DNA from: Polymyxa betae A26-41 | Lineage: Eukaryota; Protista; Endomyxa: Phytomyxea | NCBI GenBank assembly: GCA_003693705.1 | Contig: RBZT01000583.1 | Coordinates: forward strand, 1-59,740 | Direction: 5' to 3' | DNA: 59,740 nt | Notes under the pieces: model-generated | What the model was told of the DNA's origin: nothing | What the model saw: only the letters and a program-made list of their open reading frames with translations | The model's database searches: none | In this document: piece by piece, positions 16,471-51,014 of the stretch | How positions within the stretch are numbered: the stretch's first letter is position 1 | Layout of the letters: each line of letters begins with the position of its first letter | Translations under genes and position numbers: made by a program

Positions 16471-17379
16471 ATGACAACAATTCGTATTCTGGATGGTGGC
16501 ATGAGCCGCGAATTAACCCGATTAGGAGCCCAATTATATCAGCCCGAATGGTCGGCAGCAGCCCTTATCGAGACGCCCGAAATAGTTCGCAAGGTTCATG
16601 ACGAATTTATTGAGGCTGGCGCCGATATCATTACTACTAACAGCTATGCTCTTGTTCCATTTCACATCGGCGAACAGCGATTCCGTTCTGAAGGTGCCTC
16701 ATTGATCAGTTTATCTGGGGAGTTGGCAAGGGCGGCAGCGAACTCTAATACTCAACGTAAGGTGCTGGTAGCAGGCTCATTACCACCAATATTCGGCTCG
16801 TATGAACCTCAACGTTTTGATCCAACTCGTGTTCACGACTATCTATCAGTTCTGGTAGAGAACCTCTCGCCTCATGTTGATGTATGGTTGGGCGAGACCT
16901 TAAGCTTGATCGCCGAAGCCGAGGCTGTTCGTTGTGCTGTCCAGGCATCTGGAAAGCCATTCTGGGTTTCGTTTACTTTGTCGGACGATGCCGGAGCGGT
17001 TGAAGATGTACCAAGGCTAAGATCTGGTGAGACTGTGACGGAAGCTGCTCGATGGGCGACTGAATCAGGTGCTGCCGCCCTGCTCTTCAATTGCAGTCGT
17101 CCAGAAGTTATGACAAAAGCTGTTCAAGTCGCCGCAAAAATGTTGAAGGAAACTGCAATTGAGATGGGCGTGTATGCGAATGCTTTTGAGGGTGAACAAG
17201 AAGGGAACGCTAATGGGACCCTTCATGAAATTCGGGATGATCTAACTTCCGATCGGTATTGTCTATTTGCTGACGAATGGTATCGTGCTGGAGCGACACT
17301 GATTGGCGGATGTTGTGGAATCAGTGCTCAACATATCTCTCGCCTTGTCGCAGCCAAACGCGATTTTCACTGGAAATAA
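16471..17379 (+). CDS. Homocysteine S-methyltransferase family protein, intronless
   Basis: ILDGGMSREL, QPEWSA, AGADIITTNSY, VAGSLPP, LLFNCS, GVYANAF and IGGCCGI (Zn-binding cysteines). Confidence 0.95.
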   Translation: MTTIRILDGGMSRELTRLGAQLYQPEWSAAALIETPEIVRKVHDEFIEAGADIITTNSYALVPFHIGEQRFRSEGASLISLSGELARAAANSNTQRKVLVAGSLPPIFGSYEPQRFDPTRVHDYLSVLVENLSPHVDVWLGETLSLIAEAEAVRCAVQASGKPFWVSFTLSDDAGAVEDVPRLRSGETVTEAARWATESGAAALLFNCSRPEVMTKAVQVAAKMLKETAIEMGVYANAFEGEQEGNANGTLHEIRDDLTSDRYCLFADEWYRAGATLIGGCCGISAQHISRLVAAKRDFHWK

Positions 17380-26335: not shown

Positions 26336-26529
26336 ATTCCTAATTGTGCTTTAATCTTCACAAAAGATGATAATAGGACGAATACTGCAATGTAAGATGA
26401 CTTGATTGCATCTATGGGTCTGTCGTCGGCAAATTTCTGTGCTTTTGATGAATACATCATACATTCGATTAATTATTTTTACCGAAATCCCTGCCTGGTC
26501 AGACTGGTCTGCCTGGCAAGTCTGACTCA

Positions 26530-26557
26530 CGGTAAAAAAATCGCAGTTATTTTACCG
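26530..26557. repeat. 11-6-11 imperfect palindrome, putative recombinase core site
   Basis: CGGTAAAAAAA-TCGCAG-TTATTTTACCG; arms are 10/11 complementary and the spacer recurs at 28898-28903. Confidence 0.65.
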
Positions 26558-26766
26558 TCTGTAAAATAACTCTAGTTATTTTTGCCAGCTCTCGGAATCT
26601 ACAGTTATCCATAGACAGGAGCCGATTTAATGCATGCGTGAAAGCGACCGACCAGTCGCCCTGACGATTGCGATATAGATTATAAACCTGTATAGCATTG
26701 GATGTATGTAAGCCTGCCTCAAGCAAGGGCGGCATATATTAGGTGATTAATTTTGGGGCTGTTTAT

Positions 26767-28830
26767 TTAACCACGATTTTGCGCTTTGAGAAATTTTTCA
26801 AGAGCGGATATGTTTTTTTTCTGCTCGAAATATTGGTCCATCAAGTCCAGAGCATCACGCTCTTGGAACGTTGCCGAAATAAGAGATTCAGTGTGGGCGA
26901 CCAGAAACTTGATTCTGGAAAAGTACTTTTGATCAGCTGAGCTCCAACCGACGCGCCATTTCCCTTTCGTATGTACTTCAAGCTGCTTTATACCTCCAGC
27001 AACACAAGAGGCGTTGCAATCAGGAGAAAACTCGCCGATTCCATTCCACTCATTCCATATGGAGCGCATAGATCGATGACCCCTAAACGGTACGTAGTCG
27101 CTCTGGTCTGTTGATTCTGGAACCGGCACTAAGCTTGTCGGCGTGGCGCTTAGCGAACCATGACGAAGCTCAAACTGGCCGATATGGTGGATGAAACCTT
27201 GTAGTTGCGAAGTTGTGACGGTTCGTCCCAGACGATCTGTGGCGCTATCTAATTTTTCCGATAAAACACTGAGATGCCCTCCAATATCTTTATGGACCTG
27301 ATCGATTTTATCCTGAACACCAGGTAGCACTGATTCGATACTTGCTTCGAACGGACTAACAGTAGTCGACAAATATGCTTTCATAGAATCACAAAACTCA
27401 GCAAATAAAGGCGAATTAAACACGGGAAGGCTGAACAAGAAATGGTCTCGTCCGAGAAGCTTCATCATAGCTACATCTTGGAGGATAACGGATCTCATAC
27501 GAATCAACATGGTCAGAAAAGCCATCGCAGTCGGGTGCCGGCCTACATTTCGTTCTAGTTCCGCGTCGACAAATGGGAACACAGATCTGGCCAATTCTTC
27601 GGGCGGCTGCACACCCGATCGCGGAAGGTAATACATCCCTTTCTTGCGATCATGACCAGCCATGATTCGTAATGCTTGCAGTGGTAATTTCGCCGAATAC
27701 CGATCGTCTTGGGTGTCTGGATTCCAGTTTCCTAAATTCTTGATCAGTGAGGAATCCATTTCTTCCAGCTCTGCTTTCACAGCTCCAACTGATCTTCCGA
27801 AATGGACGAAGTGTTTCGACACGACGCCAAGCTTCTTGCAGGTCGAACGCATGGCTTTGGCATATGTCTGATTGTTAACGCTGACAGTATTGTCAGCAGA
27901 AGACGACTCAATTAAAAGCTTGACCCCAAACCAACTGTCGTTCGAAGAGAAATCCAAGACCTCGCCCGAAATGTGGAATCTGGCGAGCAGATAAAAGCCC
28001 AGTGCTCCGACAGCACAGAGAGTGACGTCCTTGTGCCGCACGACACGTCCATAGAGAGTTTTTAGACCGTTTGTCTTTCCGATCGCGATCCGCATTACTA
28101 GAATATGACATAAATGGGGACCGTCATCAGGCTTCATCAAATCGCAAAGATCAGAAAGCTCACAGTTAAACAAGCTTTCTCCTCGAAGAATACCACCGTT
28201 AGTCATCAGGAAGCAGAACCTGTCCCGGAGAGCACCTTGGCAGAACTTCCTTGAGAATGCATGCCTTCCAAACAGCTCTTTCTCTATCAAAGGTACTTTT
28301 TCTACCAGCAGGTAAGGTAAAAATTCAGACTGCAGCTTTTCCTCGAAGTTCATTCTGTGAACGGTCACCTTCCGAGTCTTGACTGTAGCCAGCAGCCTTT
28401 GTACACGTTCAGACCGGATCTGGTCCTTAGTCAGGTTGTTAGCGTTCATATCAACCTGCTTCTTCCAAATTTTTAGAACCGAGCACAGATACTGGTTGAC
28501 GATATCGTAGGCAACCGGCTTTTCATGGTAGTTGTCGCACTCCATAACCGAACGAAAGTGGTCAGCGTCAAATATTGCATCCTCGTCGTTTCGACGCTTC
28601 CTGCCACGTTTTCTGGAAGGTCTATAAGCTTGGTAATAAAGGAAGCCGAAAACCTTCTCTTCAGTGACAGTTGTCGGGAAGTCGTGGCTGGCATACATCT
28701 CGTTGCAAAACGCAAGGAACTCCTGACCTTTACGATCATAAGCAAGCCTTGTATTTTTACGAGTAAACTGCTCTTCATGATCAAGTATTCGCTGAGCCTG
28801 AGCTGCGAATGGGCCAGTAGTGAAGGCCAT
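26767..28830 (-). CDS. Crypton tyrosine recombinase (Ndc10 domain II-like + GCR1_C domain), first ATG at 28830
   Basis: Catalytic set: R (ILRGES), K (GKTNG), HxxR (HFGR), W (LGNW), Y (DDRYSAKLP). C-terminal IWNEW...GGIKQLE...KWR...QKYFSR is GCR1_C-like. No stops or introns. Confidence 0.92.
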   Translation of the reverse strand: MAFTTGPFAAQAQRILDHEEQFTRKNTRLAYDRKGQEFLAFCNEMYASHDFPTTVTEEKVFGFLYYQAYRPSRKRGRKRRNDEDAIFDADHFRSVMECDNYHEKPVAYDIVNQYLCSVLKIWKKQVDMNANNLTKDQIRSERVQRLLATVKTRKVTVHRMNFEEKLQSEFLPYLLVEKVPLIEKELFGRHAFSRKFCQGALRDRFCFLMTNGGILRGESLFNCELSDLCDLMKPDDGPHLCHILVMRIAIGKTNGLKTLYGRVVRHKDVTLCAVGALGFYLLARFHISGEVLDFSSNDSWFGVKLLIESSSADNTVSVNNQTYAKAMRSTCKKLGVVSKHFVHFGRSVGAVKAELEEMDSSLIKNLGNWNPDTQDDRYSAKLPLQALRIMAGHDRKKGMYYLPRSGVQPPEELARSVFPFVDAELERNVGRHPTAMAFLTMLIRMRSVILQDVAMMKLLGRDHFLFSLPVFNSPLFAEFCDSMKAYLSTTVSPFEASIESVLPGVQDKIDQVHKDIGGHLSVLSEKLDSATDRLGRTVTTSQLQGFIHHIGQFELRHGSLSATPTSLVPVPESTDQSDYVPFRGHRSMRSIWNEWNGIGEFSPDCNASCVAGGIKQLEVHTKGKWRVGWSSADQKYFSRIKFLVAHTESLISATFQERDALDLMDQYFEQKKNISALEKFLKAQNRG

Positions 28831-30000
28831 TCCTCTACCGATCTGTATGGACAGATGTTTGTCTGCCACCCAATGAGCGACTGTCTACGAACAGTGGTCG
28901 CAGTTATTTTTGCGTAGTCAGATTGCCATATTAATGTGAGTCAGACTCCTTATATATATACGATAAATAATCTCTAATTATGTTTGTAAACACTACAGTA
29001 CGGCCTGAGCTGACCAACATGATCGTTATTGATCACAACTTTCTCGCTTATCTGCTGTTTTTTGTTGTTGCATTCCTGGATTGTACCAGACCATTCATTT
29101 CAAGTTCAACACTCTTCTCGTATATATAAAAGATATCGAATATGGAATAAGTAGTTCAAAAAAATTAGCCTAATGCATGTCAACAAGGATGAGAAACTGC
29201 ATTGTCCAGCGGAATAGGTTTACGATAAGATGGAGCTGCAACGAGCAGTAGGCTCATCTGGGTTCTTGACGTAATTCAACTCAGCGCATGCTCATGATTT
29301 ATTTCTTATTGAGACTGAAGACAAGTAAAAGTCTGTAAAACCAAACTATGACAGCAAATGCTAAATTGCAATTCGGGCAATTCAAGAGCATTCTTGTAAA
29401 ACCATTGTACCAAATTAATGATAAAAACATCTCTTTCATATAAAGATAAACCATGTTTATAAGAACACTCTAAATATATTTAAAAGGACGTTTTAGGGTT
29501 CATTGCTGATGAGAACTAGCGGATACTAACTGTAATAACAAATTCTCATTTTGGTGTAGGACTCTGAAATCAGGTCAAAGTATTACTTTAAAAATCGGGG
29601 TTCGAGCTTATCAATAATTGTGATAAAATAAATGAGAGGTTGGTGGAAACTGGAAACTGGATCCAGAATGGGCGACAACTTCGTAAATCCACCGACTTCA
29701 ATATCTATTTTGAACATTGCAACTCTGTAACAAAGCGAGAATTAAACATGGGATTTTATTTTTTTTTATTCAGGAACCATCCACACTCCACAGAATGAAG
29801 GTTTTTTCTGATAAAATGGATTTTCTAAGATACTGTAGCCAGTAAATGCAACTGCAATTTCGACTTCCCTTTCTCTTAACTGAATATGAAGCACTAAGAA
29901 TAAACTGCATCTATAATGATATGAGCCAGCGACAGAGAAAAACAATATCGATTAACACTTTAGCGCTCGTCAATCAAATTCATAGGATCGTCTATGCTCA

Positions 30001-48506: not shown

Positions 48507-51014
48507 ATGGCGTCTTCAGGTTCCAGTAGCACTGGCTCAGCCACATTAAAATCTGTATTTGCACCATCACCTCAGACTAAACGAGGCTATGGTATTCAAG
48601 CGCACAGCTCGAAAAAGACGGGCCAGTTTCTGTACTGTAATGGCAAGCATGTCATCATTCGTAATCTGACGAATCCATCCCAATGTGAGATCTTTTCTGA
48701 ACATAAATGTAATGTTAATGTCGCCAAGGTCAGGCGTGTTCATGTATAAAATTAGTGCCCAGCTTATATTTCATATGACAGTTCTCACCGAATTCGGAAT
48801 GGGTTGCTTCTGGTGACAGTCGAGGACGTATTCTAATATGGGGTCTCAACAACAAATTGATCAAGAGCGAGGTTCAAGTCTGTCGTGACGTCTTGGACTT
48901 GGTTTGGTCTGATGATGGGAAACGTATCATTGGTGTTGGTGATGGTAATGGCACCTATGCTAAAGCATTTCTGTGGGATACTGGCTCTAATGTTGGAGAT
49001 ATTACCAACCACTCGAAATCTATATTGTCTGTTGATTTACGTCAACAACGTCCATATCGAGCTGCTACAGCTTCTGAAGACCGACAGATCAACTTCTATC
49101 AGGGACCGCCATTCAGATTCGATAAAATGAATGATAAACATAGTCGATATCCAAATCAGGCCTGATATAATGTGATGGGCAATTTGACCGCATCAACTGA
49201 TATTTGAGTTTAGGTTCGTTTCTCTCCAGATGGTCAGTATTTGGTATCAGTTGGATCTGATAAATTTATTCTCCTATTTGATGGAACGTCTGGAGATCTA
49301 ATTCAAGATTTTTCACAAGCTGGTACTGTTGCTAATGGACATCAAGGATCTATATGGTCATTTGCATGGTCTCCTGATTCCAAACATATTCTTACTGTTT
49401 CAGGTAATATGCAACTCCTTTCCTTTCACTGTACCATCATTTGCACCCATTCGTTGATTCATTCAAGTTTGAATCCTACGGCTTCTTAACTGTTTATTTC
49501 AGGAGACAGCACGGCTAAAGTCTGGTCTGTTCCTGACGGAAAAGTTGTTCAGACTTTCGAATTTCCAAATGATGGCACCTCGTGTCATCAACAGGTTTTT
49601 AACACTGTAATCTGTGTCACTAATTCACTGAATCGTATTAGGTTGGATGTCTATGGCATGATGAATCAACCTTGGTGACTGTATCCTTATCTGGTGCTAT
49701 CAACTGGCTCGATCTTGCTAATCCATCACAACCTCGACTTGTCGTACGAGGACATTCAGTACCTATCACAGCTCTGGCTGTAGATTCTGCTTCTCGCCAT
49801 GGTACTCTTCATGTTTTTTTTTGTTGATGAAGTTGTAGCGACCGTTTCATGAACGTTTCATTTTCAGAGTGAAGTATTTGTTTATACCGAGTCTAACGCT
49901 TTCTAGTGTTCTCGGGTGACAGCATTGGTAGTGTGTTCCGTTGGAATCCATTTACAAATGAAATCAAAGAGCTTAATGATGTTGGCGAGGGCGGGAAAAA
50001 TATTTCAGATATTTCCATAACACCTGATACACATCAACTATATTCAGCTGCATTTGATGACATGCTGCGTCTGAATTTGTATGTTGGGGCCTGCACGACT
50101 GCATATCTGCTCCTATTAATGGTTGCAGATCGAACGAGGGATGTCCTTTGGGTTCTCAACCTGTATCTATTGCTACAGGACCTGACCAGCTTGTTGTTCT
50201 GGTTACTAAGAAGAAGCAGATTGCTGTTGTATGCGATAATGTCATGGTGTGCTCTGAAAAGCCTTCATTATGTATTTTAAAGAGCCTTCTTCTAATCAGA
50301 TTTAGGTCCACTTTCTTGAACTTTCATTTGTTCCCACTGCTGTTGCTATTTCACCTGATTACAAGCAGGTATATTTTCCTGTCTGTCCTAATCTGAATAG
50401 CCACGCTCAAGATTTGTCAGGTTGCAGTTGCTGGTACTAAGAACGTCATGCTCTATGATCTCGATAACAAGAAATTGTCATTCTCAAGATCTTATGATAA
50501 GCATACAGACAATACGACATCTGTGGCCTATTCTCCTGGTTGATCAATACTTTGAATGCGTATTTTGTACTGACGTTAGACTAGATGGAAAGTACTTATG
50601 CACTTCAGATGGACAACGCAGCGTTTATGTATGGAACCGAGCCACAGGTTTAGAATTTATTTGGAATGTTTAAAGACAGTGCTTGATGGTTACTGTACAG
50701 GCCAAGTCTGTAATAGTTCAGGCTGGAGATATCACTCTGCTAAGGTCACATCTGTGGCATTTTCACCCGATTCTCGTTATTTGGCTACTGCTAGTACTGA
50801 TCAGGCTATACTTATATACACTGATTTGGTCTCGTTCCAATCAGACCGCATCAAGATTGATCGTAATATTACTAGCGGTTCCAGAGAAATTAGGTTCTGA
50901 TTCTGATTTGCAGCTGCTCATGTTGGTGGCGCATCTCATGTCAAATTTCTTGATGAGAAGTGCATTGTCAGTACAGGAGATGACCGCGCAGTTAAGCTAT
51001 GGGAATTGCCCTGA
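48507..51014 (+). CDS. WDR1: Actin-interacting protein 1 (WDR1/AIP1), multi-exon WD40
   Basis: FAPSPQTKRG, VAKFSPNSEWVASGDSRG, DTGSNVGDITNHSK, RQQRPYRAATASED, FYQGPPFRF, HQQVGCLW, WRYHSAKV. Confidence 0.93.

Follow-up and report, generated by a model that had tools for sequence, protein, structure and literature searches.

The 59,740-nucleotide contig RBZT01000583.1 of Polymyxa betae A26-41 (hereafter the window, 59.7 kb) carries a tyrosine-recombinase gene within a mobile element of the Crypton type. This locus raises the question of where the element begins and ends, and at which short sequence its recombinase would exchange strands. The initial annotation had placed the region of the ends at 26471-28947 and proposed that crossover takes place at a directly repeated TCGCAG hexamer, with integration into a defined palindrome.

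Element boundaries

The boundary data consisted of 17 element ends: five from other contigs of the same genome, ten from contigs of metagenomes or other assemblies, and the window's own two. At least five Crypton families lie behind these ends, with protein identities to the window as low as 48%. The left-end alignment held six ends from four families and the right-end alignment ten ends from at least five families. The assembly searched comprised 1,001 contigs and 27,085,814 bases. The features that define the element are listed below.

26471-28981, minus (gene) strand: complete Crypton element of 2,511 bp, from the range of homology among copies, with unrelated flanks
26471-26476, plus strand: AATTAT as left terminal direct repeat and putative crossover hexamer, invariant in the six left ends of four families; similarity begins here
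28976-28981, plus strand: right terminal direct repeat AATTAT, present in nine of ten right ends; similarity ends after the repeat
26471-26483, plus strand: left terminal block AATTATTTTTACC, with every column invariant in the alignment of six left ends
28963-28981, plus strand: near-invariant right terminal block ending AATAATCTCTAATTAT, kept in ten ends of at least five families, down to 48% protein identity

In the copies from the same genome, similarity crossed the TCGCAG sites and extended leftwards to 26471 and rightwards to 28981; outside these limits the DNA was unrelated. Further right ends were found on contigs C159 and C584, both 98-99% identical to the window and both broken off by contig ends, and a divergent left end on C416 (87% identity) began at the equivalent of 26471. 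Contigs C1001, C794 and C737 held, respectively, a remnant, an internal fragment and a divergent right end. A protein search revealed a 97%-identical protein of 687 amino acids in three metagenomes. Three metagenome contigs (L019, L020 and L021) carried copies that were 94.5% identical in DNA, with homology running exactly from 28981 to 26471 and bordered by three different flanks. The same tips, followed by immediate divergence outside, were present in L022, a contig from ENA encoding a protein of 68% identity, and in L023 and L024, two relatives with 48% protein identity. Termini of the AATTAT type were not shared by the more distant L025 (a JGI (Joint Genome Institute) metagenome contig, 48% identity) and L026 (44%).

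Based on this comparison, the true ends of the element are the AATTAT repeats at 26471-26476 and 28976-28981. The left limit of the initial annotation was correct, while its right limit fell 34 bp short of 28981. The TCGCAG hexamers sit 70 bp (left) and 78 bp (right) inside the element, and since the homology of the copies passes both of them before reaching unrelated flanks, the motifs described around them are subterminal and crossover at TCGCAG is not upheld.

The element is multicopy with defined boundaries and a different flank at each insertion, as expected of a Crypton, and AATTAT provides the short (4-6 bp) terminal direct repeats without terminal inverted or long direct repeats that are typical of the group. 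Repeat analysis of the ends detected no terminal inverted repeats at the tips; the inverted repeats that were found are the subterminal motifs. The right terminal block had five exact copies in the genome, each at a Crypton end. One-mismatch matches to this block on C120, C323 and C743 had no Crypton features and were attributed to chance. The single exception to AATTAT among the ten aligned right ends was AAATAT. In the L019 insertion the left hexamer is AATTAT and the right one AAATAT, as would be expected from use of a near-identical target hexamer. The pre-insertion sites could be rebuilt for the window, L019, L020 and L022, and these four sites had only AATTAT in common. None was palindromic, and the idea of integration into a defined palindrome was dropped.

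A search of the assembly with each end alone found no solo or miniature derivatives. On C794, at about 50958-50980 (L002:1481-1503), a copy truncated from the equivalent of 26867 adjoins a short telomere-like inverted pair, GGGTTAGGGTTTTAAACCCTAACC. The remnant on C1001 (74671-74887; L006:1501-1715) has a 259-bp internal deletion whose right breakpoint immediately follows AGTTAT in the right subterminal site. This breakpoint was given no weight as evidence because it adjoins a gap of 52 N and may be a scaffolding artefact.

Recombinase gene and element class

The gene occupies most of the element and is read from the minus strand. Its features are as follows.

26767-28830, minus strand: open reading frame (ORF) of 687 amino acids from the ATG at 28830, stop codon included (700 amino acids from an in-frame GTG at 28869), from ORF translation
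27403-28446, minus strand: tyrosine-recombinase-type domain, Pfam NDC10_II, E = 1.6e-34 to 2.5e-34, the only strong Pfam match of the ORF
26833-27075, minus strand: predicted GCR1_C-like C-terminal DNA-binding domain, 22.5 bits

In an alignment of 19 relatives, R216, H343, R346, W369 and Y378 were invariant and K252 nearly so, which matches the catalytic set of tyrosine recombinases. The element encodes this single 687-residue ORF with its R-H-R-Y residues, and neither a reverse transcriptase nor a DDE transposase, as is characteristic of Cryptons. The GCR1_C match spans profile positions 8-78 of 80 and at 22.5 bits lies just below the Pfam gathering cutoff of 23 bits. The same region scored 25.3 bits in a relative with 68% identity and 26.8 bits in one with 48% identity. 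Taking the scores of the window and its relatives together, the GCR1_C domain is very probably present in the window protein. A sequence search against solved structures gave no match.

The kinetochore protein Ndc10/Cbf2 is a domesticated CryptonF recombinase. The window protein resembles it through the NDC10_II match (E = 1e-34) but differs in that its gene keeps the catalytic residues and is mobile and multicopy. NDC10_II is itself derived from CryptonF, and the match lends indirect support to a probable placement in the CryptonF group. The combination of NDC10_II, a very probable GCR1_C, the R-K-H-R-W-Y residues and 6-bp AT-rich direct repeats fits an intact CryptonF-type DNA transposon. 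Recent activity is suggested because other copies in the genome are 98-99% identical.

The ATG at 28830 sits 151 nt inside the element end. The initial annotation had put it about 70 nt inside the TCGCAG repeat and considered that expression might depend on flanking DNA; the greater distance from the true end weakens that case.

Proposed strand exchange and subterminal sites

The description of CryptonF and the model of its movement are reportedly those of Goodwin et al. from 2003, a model that has been seen at work in a Chlamydomonas CryptonF. It is quite probable that the sequences at 26471-28981 represent the ends of an intact, recently active CryptonF-type transposon that is bounded by AATTAT and moves by a mechanism of this Goodwin type. 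The encoded tyrosine recombinase would excise the element as a circle holding one AATTAT, placed between the right-end block (ending AATAATCTCT) and the left-end block (TTTTTACC). Strand exchange would occur within AATTAT or at its borders. The circle site would then recombine with a genomic AATTAT or a near match, with little further sequence needed, and AATTAT would be left at both junctions. The TCGCAG repeat, both palindromes and the GTCWGAC motifs, which lie 20-115 bp inside the ends, would most plausibly serve as extra binding sites for the recombinase, its GCR1_C domain or both. These extra sites could assemble a donor-site complex in the manner of the arm-type and accessory sites of bacterial integrase systems.

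Several points weigh against this interpretation. The AATTAT circle junction and the empty site, both of them predictions, were not seen, and the assembly holds just one other left end. In the predicted junction, the flanks of AATTAT do not form an inverted-repeat pair, as they would in a canonical core. The closest dyad, AAATAAT-CTCTA-ATTATTT, is shifted relative to AATTAT, and the junction is therefore no textbook symmetric core. Binding of the motifs by the protein is likewise a prediction. A crossover in the CTCTA centre of the dyad was also considered and rejected, as CTCTA and the left flanks have no more than its last A in common and overlap identity would fail.

The subterminal features of the two ends are given below.

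26498-26526, no strand: left GTCWGAC cluster with copies at 26498-26504, 26507-26513 (degenerate) and 26520-26526, from the motif count and the left-end alignment
26529-26558, no strand: palindrome 1, dif-like with 11-6-11 geometry and spacer TCGCAG at 26541-26546, from an inverted-repeat search; arms invariant in four families
26559-26587, no strand: palindrome 2, which resembles the predicted circle junction; the best non-self match to the junction, with conserved arms
28898-28914, plus strand: right subterminal site made up of TCGCAG and TTATTTTTGCG, a half-site resembling the right-hand part of palindrome 1, from a 13-bp direct repeat
28917-28947, plus strand: right GTCAGAY pair at 28917-28924 and 28940-28947; two GTCWGAC copies occur at the right end in every aligned family

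All five sequence features named in the initial annotation were found where it had placed them. TCGCAG is directly repeated at 26541-26546 and 28898-28903, each copy followed by TTATTTT, giving a 13-bp direct repeat TCGCAGTTATTTT that starts at 26541 and 28898. The left copy lies in an 11-6-11 arrangement, ACGGTAAAAAAA-TCGCAG-TTATTTTACCGT, with 12-nt arms that are 92% complementary and a 6-nt spacer. The second palindrome is present at 26563-26582, and GTCAGAYT occurs at 26498, 28917 and 28940 on the plus strand and at 26519 on the minus strand. The stretches outside the hexamers do form imperfect inverted repeats, the best pairing 26519-26535 with 28931-28947 over 17 nt at 88%, but they are element sequence and not the halves of a palindromic target. 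Of the initial interpretation, the identity as a Crypton was upheld, as were the conserved, clustered arrays at its ends with an 11-6-11 palindrome of a type bound by tyrosine recombinases, and the marking of the recombination ends by a 6-bp direct repeat; that repeat is AATTAT and not TCGCAG.

GTCWGAC is a 7-bp palindrome that is kept in the families as three left and two right copies of variable orientation. In relatives, the first two motifs of the left cluster build a perfect 16-bp palindrome. Four of the eight GTCAGAYT matches in the window fall within about 190 bp of element ends, while 5.5 matches would be expected over the whole 59.7 kb, and four of the seven matches to the related motif ARTTATTTTWRC lie in the same ends. 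This clustering indicates that the motifs are real and non-random. Compared with the window, L022 shows 76.7% identity in its left end and 70% in its coding region, so the non-coding end is at least as constrained as the gene. At the right subterminal site, conservation across families is limited to the GTTAT-like part.

A half-motif of roughly YARTTATTTTTRCS was observed at four places. One copy, with AATTAT inside it, forms the left tip, another lies close to the right end, and each palindrome contains one in its right half. When the predicted 29-nt circle junction was compared with the window, the best non-self match was palindrome 2 (21 of 29 positions, against a background maximum of 18), so that the junction site seems to be present in internal copies within the left end. 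With moderate confidence, the subterminal motifs and palindromes are taken as putative binding sites for the recombinase, the GCR1_C domain or both, and in this form the broader proposal of core-type and accessory sites stands.

An alternative is that the palindromes act as hairpins, either in the 3' untranslated region or in single-stranded DNA, with roles in 3'-end formation or replication. On the coding strand they are found 180-240 nt past the stop codon, and their arms could pair, with 89% of the cells across relatives being standard pairs. No compensatory substitutions were found in the palindromes, although six sequences give little power; with that limit, the absence of covariation speaks more for protein-binding half-sites than for hairpins. 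Pairing is disrupted by three kinds of substitution, and every sequence has a mismatch at one and the same position. The centre of palindrome 2 is 2 nt, too short for a loop, and unpaired copies of the half-motif are present at the left tip and close to the right end. Hairpins of this kind are considered rather unlikely.

Palindrome 1 invites a different extension, in which the element would have two kinds of site: the terminal AATTAT for insertion and excision, and an internal lox- or dif-like site with invariant arms and a family-specific spacer. As in XerCD/dif and Cre/loxP, palindrome 1 has 11-bp inverted arms around a 6-bp asymmetric spacer, within the range of 11-13-bp arms and 6-8-bp spacers of such sites, and its arms are conserved while the spacer varies. 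Across the four families the spacer reads TCGCAG, TCGCAG, CTGTGG and GTGCGA, differing at most positions. In contrast to those systems, palindrome 1 is off the element boundary, and the actual junction is not a symmetric core. No TCGCAG junctions were found in the assembly; the element junctions are at AATTAT, 70 bp away. As it is not at the boundary, palindrome 1 is not the site whose exchange defines insertion. A second kind of site is judged to be an outside possibility. If it existed, the recombinase could resolve circle multimers or recombine copies via palindrome 1, the spacer would be a compatibility code between Crypton families, and a tandem duplication in L022 would be a footprint of its use. 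This duplication (L022:5330-5446), a single case, is 116 bp long and combines 43 bp of flank with approximately the outermost 72 bp at the left end of the element. The breakpoint lies inside the 6-bp spacer of palindrome 1 and the joint has no microhomology; recombinase cleavage at that spot, faulty repair or an error in assembly could each account for it.

The AATTAT repeats could also be explained as target-site duplications from staggered cutting at a strictly preferred hexamer, comparable to TTAA for piggyBac. The end hexamers are identical and the target is AT-rich, and sequence comparison alone cannot separate the two models. The element encodes no enzyme other than a tyrosine recombinase, whose catalytic residues are intact; it has no DDE transposase and no inverted repeat at the tips, and what has been observed of an active CryptonF agrees with conservative recombination (PMC9977147). 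Duplication by staggered cutting is on these grounds improbable.

Crossover at TCGCAG, with a mobile unit of 26541-28903 and with 26471-26540 and 28904-28981 as the two halves of a palindromic target, draws on the 13-bp identity of the two sites and the imperfect inverted repeat outside them, but is barely tenable: the supposed target halves are present in every copy of every family beside different flanks, the left and right hexamers differ in related families (TCGCAG/TCGCAG in the window, TCGCAG/GCGCAG in the 94.5%-identical relatives and GTGCGA/TTTTGG in L022, so that left-right identity is confined to the window's own family), and the predicted empty site and circle junction were absent from the 27-Mb assembly at up to three mismatches, with only the known integrated sites matched.

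Related systems and genome context

Described CryptonF elements combine a recombinase with GCR1_C and have AT-rich terminal direct repeats of 6 bp, among them GATAAT, ATTATC and ATAACT, which are viewed as the substrates of recombination (PMC3212892). The window element resembles them in its single ORF with a tyrosine recombinase and, very probably, a C-terminal GCR1_C, its membership in the 2.5-5 kb size range, its low copy number, and its tips, which lack inverted repeats and carry a 6-bp AT-rich direct repeat, here AATTAT. It differs in its host, a phytomyxid (Rhizaria), and in having ends with conserved subterminal palindromes and GTCWGAC motifs. In their 2011 paper, Kojima and Jurka found no conserved nucleotide sequences among Cryptons of different species (PMC3212892), whereas the 13-bp and approximately 19-bp terminal blocks of the window element are invariant across families at 48% protein identity. 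The active CryptonF-1_cRei of Chlamydomonas has CACCG ends and a CAYCG target, and in mutation-accumulation lines it was excised cleanly, leaving one target copy (PMC9977147). The window element looks like a case of the same mechanism with AATTAT.

Other systems are less close. CryptonS elements of stramenopiles (CryptonS-1_PTri) are also tyrosine-recombinase DNA transposons with short terminal direct repeats, but they lack GCR1_C and end in TATGG or CTGTAAG, in contrast to the very probable GCR1_C and the AATTAT of the window element. Like lambda-type attP and the ends of conjugative transposons, the ends also appear to form a complex donor site, about 200 bp in size, in which repeated motifs flank a short crossover sequence, and as in Tn916 and CTnDOT the target would need few matching bases. 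They would differ from these systems in that the element is eukaryotic and relies on a single protein with two DNA-binding parts. More distantly, L025 has different ends (1-511 and 2564-2990) with dense arrays of a CCATGG(T/A)ATA-like motif, of which over ten copies precede the gene and six or more follow it; motif arrays at both ends may be a general trait of the Crypton clade that holds L025 and the window element.

A search of one paper library found no paper naming Cryptons together with phytomyxid genera, and the element would extend the CryptonF type to a phytomyxid host. Its boundaries, as corrected here, are ones that any annotation would otherwise have inherited in error. The conserved terminal blocks and the subterminal architecture add modestly new detail to what appears to be an ordinary CryptonF type and no new kind of system. 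We know of no biochemical system for Crypton transposition, knowledge of which derives from the comparison of sequences and from a single mutation-accumulation study. The present family supplies defined substrates for one, namely a junction that is invariant down to 48% protein identity, a dif-like palindrome, a palindromic 7-bp motif recurring at both ends and an intact recombinase gene.

Within the genome, a protein search matched the window recombinase to 38 stretches on about 28 contigs, including several families near 30% identity. Further Crypton-like genes were located at, for example, C508:2087-3331, C426:3790-5163, C377:379-1401, C983:8118-9308 and C887:4769-5517. Several of the Crypton-like genes are open frames of about 500 amino acids at roughly 30% identity, and decayed copies were found at 72-78%. 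Judged from these matches, the 27-Mb genome is rich in tyrosine-recombinase elements.

Two other genes of the window were also searched. For the gene of a glycosylphosphatidylinositol (GPI)-transamidase subunit, Plasmodiophora brassicae gave the one strong match (41% identity, E = 7e-114). An intronless homocysteine S-methyltransferase gene at 16471-17379 encodes a protein that is 72% identical to one of Spongospora and about 70% identical to many from Rhizobiaceae, a pattern that fits an old bacterial acquisition shared among plasmodiophorids.

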